A DNA stretch of 64,000 bases from Octopus sinensis. Taxonomy: Eukaryota. The stretch spans positions 81,096,001-81,160,000 of the forward strand of contig NC_042999.1 in NCBI RefSeq assembly GCF_006345805.1, read 5' to 3'. The number at the start of each line of letters is the position of its first letter. The stretch's first letter is position 1. Both the position numbers and the translations under genes were made by a program. A model generated the notes under the pieces. That model was not told the origin of the DNA. It saw only the letters and a program-made list of their open reading frames with translations, and did no database searches. Below, in pieces: positions 54,125-54,775 of the stretch.

Positions 54125-54272
54125 TATGGCTGTGTGGTAAGAATCTTGCTTCACAACCACATGATTCCAGGTTCAGTCCCTCTGCGTGTGACACCTTGGG
54201 TAAGTGTGGGCCGACCAAAGCCTTGTGAATGGATTTGGTAGACGGAAACTAAAAGAATCCCATTGTGTATAT
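54125..54272 (+). mobile_element. SINE S3 5' half
   Basis: TGGCTGTGTGGTAAG (A box), GGTTCAGTCCC (B box), GCCTTGTGAATGGATTTGGTAGACGGAAACT. Confidence 0.85.
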
Positions 54273-54320
54273 AAATAAATAAATATATATATATATATAT
54301 ATATATATATATATATATAT

Positions 54321-54556
54321 TAGAATTTACACTTGCGTCTCTGTCCTCTGAAGACTGCGTGTGTATCGTTGGCGATTTTCTGTCTCCGTCCTCCCTTCTT
54401 TGGATCTTTCCTTTTCCTGTTTCTGATGAAGACCTCCACTTGTAACGTTAAACCCTCCTTCTTCTCTTCCTTCCTGAGCGTCAAATAATACTATATTTGT
54501 TCCACGTCCTCGCGTTGTTGTGTTTCATCTTTGTGTTTTTATGTTTGGATTAACTA
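54321..54556 (+). mobile_element. PLE pLTR 3' fragment with a degenerate hammerhead (canonical CTGATGA core) inside (TA)n
   Basis: GTTT-CTGATGA-A-GACC..ACTT-GTAAC-GTT-AAAC...TTCCTGAGCG..AATACTATA..TTTGTTCCAC has the same layout as the pLTR ends at 8570 and 42790. Confidence 0.65.
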
Positions 54557-54659
54557 TATATATACATATATATATATATATATATATATATATATATATA
54601 TATATATATTATATATATATATATGTGTGTGTGTGTGTGTGTGTGTGTGTGTGTGTGTA

Positions 54660-54775
54660 TGTGTATGTATGTGTGTGTGTGTATCTTTGTGTATGTGTTT
54701 GTCTCACACCCCATCACCGCTTGACAACTGGTGTAGGTATTATTACGTCCCTGTAATCTAACGGTTCGTCAAACA
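54660..54775 (+). mobile_element. SINE S3 3' half
   Basis: GTGTTTGTC...CCGCTTGACAACTGGTGTAGG...TACGTCCCTGTAATCTAACGGTTCG matches the tail at 62480. Confidence 0.75.

Follow-up and report, generated by a model that had tools for sequence, protein, structure and literature searches.

A Penelope-like sequence nested within the internal (TA)n tract of a SINE-like repeat in Octopus sinensis

A repeat found split in two by a piece of another repeat, with a TA microsatellite on either side of the intruding piece, raises the question of whether the microsatellite belonged to the host repeat and served as the target of an insertion or was made by the incoming element. We addressed this question for a locus at 54.3 kb in a 64-kb stretch of O. 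sinensis contig NC_042999.1, the whole of which is referred to here as the window. At 54125-54775, the plus strand carries the 5' part of a SINE-like repeat (54125-54266, ending ...gaaactaaaagaatcccattgtg / ...ggtagacggaaactaaaagaatcccattgtg, as delimited by direct reading and self-BLAST), followed by a left (TA)n tract with an imperfect start (54267-54320; 26.5 copies at 54268-54320 according to TRF) and a nonrepetitive insert of 235 bp recognized by direct reading (54321-54555). Beyond the insert lie a right tract of (TA)35 (54555-54624; 35.5 copies by TRF), a (GT)n run that is part of the compound microsatellite of the SINE (54624-54702, plus strand, delimited by TRF, with its counterpart in the alignment at 62430-62482), and the SINE tail (54703-54775, plus strand), which is 70% identical to 62489-62550 and is missing approximately its last 100 nt.

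BLAST searches within the window matched the 5' part to two other places, with 90% identity between 54214-54261 and 62340-62387 and 80% identity between 54125-54207 and 44565-44487 on the minus strand. When the insert was removed by script and the two flanks were joined, the product was colinear with 62340-62642 across head, TA, GT, and tail, and the locus is therefore correctly read as a repeat split in its own TA tract. The two SINE halves keep their proper order and orientation around a single insert, and no SINE sequence was lost. Hence, 54125-54775 is a SINE-like repeat split within its own internal (TA)n, and on this layout (5' half, (TA)n, insert, (TA)n(GT)n, tail) direct reading, TRF, and the joined-flank alignment all agree with the preliminary description of the locus. 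Approximately 123 bp of TA surrounds the insert, compared to the 39 bp that the uninterrupted SINE contains.

That uninterrupted reference copy lies on the plus strand at 62340-62642 and is 5' truncated. It contains (TA)19(TG)26 internally and has a 3' tail of the (TA)n(GATA)n type, which direct reading and TRF resolved as (TA)16(GATA)20. Its sequence order is ...gaaagaagcccgtcg-(TA)19-(TG)26-tail with nothing in between, just as had been described for an uninterrupted copy placed at 62345. This copy carries TA at the same position and so shows that the TA tract belongs to the repeat itself. Three dispersed copies of the short repeat occur in the 64 kb, and two stretches of its head, TGGCTGTGTGG and GGTTCAGTCCC, look, by eye only, like the A and B boxes of a polymerase III promoter. 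However, neither ARAGORN nor Rfam called a tRNA in the SINE head, and its tRNA origin is therefore unproven. SINEs are reported to make up about 12% of the DNA of the octopod, and the host repeat presumably resembles the abundant Octopus SINE. A scan of metagenome contigs for the SINE pattern found none, with one chance match in a bacterial MAG. Compound (TA)n(GATA)n arrays also occur four times in the window, all in one orientation (15899-15990, 42340-42556, 44366-44460, and 62641-62723); the last of these is the 3' tail of the reference SINE copy, and SINE tails may thus supply further TA tracts.

Most of the insert is derived from the end of a PLE. Alignment, BLAST, and nhmmer identified 54376-54555 (plus strand) as a 5'-truncated copy of a pseudo-LTR 3' end, which aligns with the terminal ~180 bp of two pseudo-LTRs (3360-4242 and 7857-8713) as well as with a solo copy (42780-42923). 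Common to all of these are the boxes TCTGATGAAGA and TTCCTGAGCG and a terminus located just before TATATA. The nhmmer match of the insert (E = 1e-26) was obtained with a profile that includes the insert fragment itself; independent support came from BLAST, with 66% identity over 128 bp to 4056-4180 and 8527-8651. For the first 55 bp (54321-54375, plus strand), BLAST found no alignment with the local pseudo-LTR; they contain a CTGAAGACTG box resembling one in the 43.5-kb element. Within them, 54323-54353 matches 53364-53394, approximately 960 bp upstream, at 29 of 31 positions. The upstream stretch lacks TA flanks, is surrounded by no further similarity, and could represent either a very small relic or templated filler at the 5' junction. 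The insert had been described as a 235-bp pLTR end; this holds for the homologous last 180 bp and does not extend to the first 55 bp, so that 180 of the 235 bp are what we regard as PLE derived. As identity between the insert and the full-length PLE of the window reaches only 66%, the parent of the insert belongs to another subfamily, which is absent from the window. The central observation, namely, a PLE piece within the internal (TA)n of a SINE, stands nonetheless, with a 5'-truncated PLE copy on one side of the comparison and TA in the uninterrupted SINE on the other.

The local full-length PLE, which is frameshifted, spans 3360-8713 on the plus strand, comprises pseudo-LTRs, a reverse transcriptase (RT), a linker, and a GIY-YIG domain, and has (TA)n on both sides. 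Repeat finding across the entire window returned mainly microsatellites, and masked self-BLAST was used instead; it resolved the pseudo-LTRs (3360-4242 and 7857-8713) as direct terminal repeats with 93.6% identity. The RT at 5572-6777 matched Pfam RVT_1 with 33.7 bits, above the cutoff of that model, and was 58% identical over 380 amino acids to protein P0001, which contains DUF8422, RVT_1, and HTH_animal domains. The linker CSRPRCRTC (CSRPRCRTCPYL; frame +2, ~7330-7370) aligned to CSRKRCNTC of P0001 and has the form CX4CxxC, which fits the Zn-finger-like CX2-5CxxC linker between RT and endonuclease. A C-terminal GIY-YIG endonuclease with CCHH at ~7330-7738 was recognized with tblastn, by which NIIYCISCSLCNSLYI and GRRLADRFAEQLRDI align to the GIY-YIG region of P0001; Pfam searches of the window open reading frames (ORFs) gave no GIY-YIG match, and the region is frameshifted. 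The best protein relatives of the element are only 60 to 66% identical to it. With a telomerase-like RT, a C-terminal GIY-YIG domain, and pseudo-LTRs, 3360-8713 shows the features of a canonical EN+ PLE, and its architecture is that of a Neptune/Nematis-type PLE (PMC8557442), an assignment based on linker and architecture and not on phylogeny.

Weaker PLE remnants were observed at 4-288 (minus strand, at the window edge, with GIY-YIG and a CGRSNCATC linker) and at 36919-37361 (an RT fragment), and the 64 kb contains no fewer than three PLE lineages. Other retroelements are represented by LINE/retroelement remnants at 29475-33112 and 39806-40621 (zf-CCHC, RVT_1, and zf-RVT), and, among named sequences, the closest homologue of the LINE RT remnant comes from the cuttlefish Acanthosepion pharaonis (55%), which suggests a cephalopod source. 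Elsewhere in the window, 12456-15980 is a tandem duplication of ~1.74 kb (12456-14236 versus 14197-15980, 95.9% identity) with internal palindromes at 12595-13334 and 14339-15077, and 49361-50345 contains very recent repeats (99%), including a direct pair (49473-49786 and 50031-50345) and an inverted pair (49361-49474 versus 50142-50255) with 99% identity.

The preliminary description had also called the insert hammerhead bearing, and here it went too far, since helix II of the motif is lost and its GAAAC has become GTAAC. A decayed minimal hammerhead motif, tgtttCTGATGAAGACCTCCACTTGTAACGTTaaacc, is located at 54418-54455 on the plus strand, with box 1 and helix I kept: box 1, at 54423, is CTGATGA, intact and followed by A. 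In helix II, GACC..ACTT pairs at two of four positions, the column 14-25 pair is G-U in this copy, and the G10.1-C11.1 closure is absent; the GAAA box reads GTAAC-GTT, with A13 changed to T and the ACGT palindrome kept. The other copies in the window have core mutations as well (CTGTTGA at 4102 and 8573 and CTTTCGA at 42793). Given a core mutation in every window copy, the insert bears a dead, decayed hammerhead relic, and no hammerhead copy in the window is predicted to be active.

Two loci of other species, L002 and L003, both of them complex PLE arrays that lack TA tracts, were used for comparison of the hammerhead only. Between the window copies and these loci, helix I (4 to 5 bp) has three pairs with compensatory changes (87% of cells paired; observed covariation score equaled in 0/500 shuffles), a result obtained from only six sequences, from which the structure itself was drawn. 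Rfam hammerhead covariance models matched nothing in the window, either at the gathering threshold or at E ≤ 10. However, L003 holds a textbook minimal motif, gctCTGACGA-A-GGGC-TAAC-GCTC-GAAAC-GTC-agc, which Rfam misses equally, indicating that its models do not cover this variant and that their silence on the window is uninformative; we therefore dropped that silence as evidence against the motif. At 5515-5579, L003 also has perfect head-to-head PLE pseudo-LTR ends that form a long hairpin, on which Rfam placed a mir-H11 match below threshold (E = 3e-8), likely a false positive. The motifs resemble the minimal dimeric hammerheads of PLEs (Cervera and de la Pena 2014, PMC4209133) in their CUGANGA box, the lack of a helix III loop, GAAAC-GU with a palindromic ACGU, a covarying helix I of 4 to 5 bp, and, in the better copies, a helix II of 4 bp with G10.1-C11.1 as its closing pair, and they differ from them in that all window copies are mutated in the core.

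A second SINE copy, on the minus strand at 43078-44565, is also interrupted. Alignment placed its tail half, with a remnant of a TA/GA/GT microsatellite, at 43078-43340, and its head, the minus-strand match of 54125-54207 noted above, at 44487-44565. Between them, a 37-nt PLE tail fragment (43341-43377, plus strand) adjoins (TA)24; it was recognized by its similarity to the last 42 nt of a neighboring element (31/43 identity, a score equaled in 0 of 500 shuffles). That neighbor, at 43431-44365 on the minus strand, is a pseudo-LTR-only PLE derivative of 935 bp with (TA)n at both ends, in which an 862-bp unit follows a 79-nt partial copy, giving a partial tandem of 1.09 copies (98.7% identity between 43424-43502 and 44286-44364 by masked self-BLAST). 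It has no ORF and contains a hammerhead-like box; its nhmmer match (E = 4e-20) was obtained with a profile that includes 43431-44365 itself. A relative of this element lies at 25696-25990 (minus strand), with its 3' end adjoining (TA)7. The two PLE pieces in the SINE tract thus stand tail to tail across (TA)24, an arrangement which implies that PLEs hit the tract twice, independently. The same layout as that at 54.3 kb had been claimed for 43.1 to 44.6 kb; the SINE is indeed interrupted in the same region, but ~29 nt beside the microsatellite is missing, a (CTAT)24 array is present, and two PLE pieces rather than one are involved.

The pseudo-LTR-only element is similar to the non-LTR retrozymes, which are nonautonomous PLE derivatives (PMC7229834; bioRxiv 10.64898/2026.07.22.740005), in consisting of pseudo-LTR sequence in partial tandem without an ORF. 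Its 862-bp unit, however, is longer than typical monomers, its ribozyme core is noncanonical, and it is known here from its DNA sequence alone. The remaining copy considered here is the solo pseudo-LTR 3' end at 42780-42923 (plus strand, possibly from 42557), which is followed by (TA)28(TG)48 and is 84% identical to 4089-4239; its nhmmer match (E = 8e-34) likewise comes from a profile that includes 42780-42923 itself. On the 5' side, this solo copy (42.6 to 42.9 kb) has (GA)n rather than TA.

The positions of these copies bear directly on whether TA is target or product. Tracts of (TA)≥5 occupy 3.3 to 3.4% of the window (59 merged tracts), and the chance that a random junction lies no more than 4 nt from one of them, our strict test, is P = 0.0365. 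All six PLE 3' ends (8709, 42916, 54554, and 43374 and, on the minus strand, 43431 and 25696) adjoin TA; five satisfy the strict test, and the remaining one lies beside an imperfect TA run. TA also adjoins four of the five defined 5' ends (3360, 54321, 43339, and 44365), the exception being 42557. This census of ends left out the weak remnants at 4-288 and 36919-37361. Window wide, PLE ends thus show a strong two-sided association with (TA)n that is not a matter of chance, and the copies end precisely at one and the same 3' terminus.

The preliminary description had pointed out that the case for a target would fail if the flanking TA were synthesized as a tail by the element itself. Such a tail would be either templated or extended by slippage during reverse transcription, and some features fit it, as in both PLE families the repeat unit terminates with 6 to 7 nt of TA and the TA beside the insert is longer than the 39 bp of the uninterrupted SINE. 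However, the uninterrupted SINE has TA at exactly the same position, truncated copies have TA at their 5' junctions as well, a place at which a tail would not be expected, and the internal junctions of the partial tandems (4236-4242 and 44286-44291) have only 6 to 7 nt of TA, in contrast to the tracts of 50 to 70 bp seen here. Both the TA at 5' ends and the short tandem junctions argue that the long TA tracts are probably targets and not element-made tails, and we consider a tail as the source of the flanking TA highly improbable. We also considered a relationship between the SINE tail and the PLE tail, as both are T rich and end in TA, and dropped it, since the likeness is one of low complexity and the two are in opposite orientations. 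The longest TA tract in the window, 222 bp, is located elsewhere, in a foldback-like structure at 56260-57722, between inverted arms of 245 nt that are 85% complementary and have relatives at 9900-10079 and 48575-48696.

We suggest that the locus at 54.3 kb is most probably an ordinary nested retrotransposon insertion, in which a linker-bearing PLE of the Neptune/Nematis type entered the SINE's own TA tract. The insertion is inferred and not observed, because a target-site duplication is unreadable within a TA tract and because the analysis covered no empty orthologous site. In the proposed sequence of events, which draws on published PLE work (PMC8557442; PMC11167929), the PLE endonuclease would nick within the TA tract of the SINE, and reverse transcription would begin at the defined 3' site of the PLE and stop early, leaving only the last 180 to 235 bp of a pseudo-LTR with a minimal hammerhead motif that later decayed. 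The terminal (UA)3, or the 6 to 7 nt of TA at the end of the repeat unit, may help the RNA anneal to the nicked TA target, a step that is weakened by the finding that the Poseidon PLE primes in vitro, starting reverse transcription without homology to the target (PMC11167929). The SINE would copy its own TA tract whenever it moves; as the SINE carries TA and the PLE prefers TA, every new SINE copy would be one more preferred PLE target.

Three other histories could place a PLE piece between two SINE halves. The composite may have arisen at the RNA level, through two template switches in (UA)n microhomology or through amplification of a composite subfamily as a unit, and both the TA microhomology at the two junctions and the known complexity of tandem and inverted PLE structures (PMC8557442) are in line with it. 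Yet the reverse transcriptase would have had to switch templates twice and resume, in register, on the SINE RNA that it had left, BLAST found no second copy of the composite in the window, and the other interrupted SINE has different PLE pieces with different junctions, so that we hold this route to be highly improbable. In a further scenario, PLE cDNA would have been captured, with no part played by the endonuclease, during repair of a double-strand break in the fragile (TA)n. Long TA tracts are prone to breakage, and the 55 bp, 31 nt of which nearly duplicates sequence located 960 bp upstream, resembles the templated filler of error-prone end joining. Against this stands the precise element 3' terminus that six of six copies share beside TA, a signature of primed reverse transcription that random capture would not give; break-repair capture is accordingly an unlikely source of the insert, to be given only a small chance. 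A piece of PLE flanked by TA could also have come to lie between the two halves of the SINE through recombination, or gene conversion, of (TA)n tracts that are otherwise unrelated, TA being abundant (59 merged tracts, 3.4% of the window), but ordered and oriented halves with one insert and no SINE loss are explained more parsimoniously by simple insertion, and exchange between tracts seems extremely unlikely.

Much of what insertion into a SINE-borne TA tract involves has precedents. A (TA)n insertion bias has been reported for PLE clades with a CX2-5CxxC-type linker, namely, Naiad and Hydra, and was proposed for Neptune (PMC8557442), and purified PLE protein nicks AT-rich DNA (PMC11167929). 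The elements in the window resemble these linker-bearing EN+ PLEs (Neptune/Nematis, Naiad, and Hydra; Craig et al. 2021, PMC8557442) in their partial-tandem pseudo-LTRs and 5' truncation and also in their (TA)n flanks and tandem and inverted arrangements (PMC8557442; Arkhipova 2006 as cited there). They differ in that the full-length copy here is frameshifted and the target tract is carried by another transposon. In the human genome, hotspots inside older transposable elements attract younger ones (PMC2836564), and the closest parallel is the insertion of Alu into Alu (Levy, Schwartz, and Ast 2010, PMC2836564), in which an older, amplified short element likewise carries the preferred sequence of a younger retroelement, so that nesting concentrates at one position of the host. 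Here, however, the hotspot is a microsatellite, and the incomer is a PLE with a GIY-YIG nuclease rather than an L1-driven element. Our literature search found no report of PLE-in-SINE nesting in octopus. The relay of PLEs through SINEs, of which the preliminary description knew no earlier account, is nevertheless largely anticipated by published work on the linker-tied (TA)n bias, AT-rich nicking, and transposon-borne hotspots, and 54.3 kb is a new instance of known behavior, with no new mechanism and no new kind of element. It serves as a worked example of two published facts: linker PLEs enter (TA)n, and older transposons carry the targets of younger ones.

Whether SINEs act as mobile landing pads for PLEs on the scale of the genome is a wider matter. 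Two of the three SINE copies in the window contain PLE sequence, compared to 3 of ~45 other TA loci (Fisher P = 0.025, a post hoc value for a window chosen for this very feature). Such a relay is plausible, and it rests on three SINE copies in one window. SINE-borne (TA)n might even be a major sink for PLEs, with SINE amplification having reshaped the distribution of PLEs and their pseudo-LTR-only derivatives, a possibility that we raise tentatively and regard as somewhat doubtful. If it is true, thousands of near-identical SINE targets would constitute a natural library in which to map PLE nick sites, orientation, and target duplication. If the pattern holds genome-wide, SINE copies would be replicate targets with known flanks that could help measure PLE target choice, and the nesting would help explain local repeat pile-ups.
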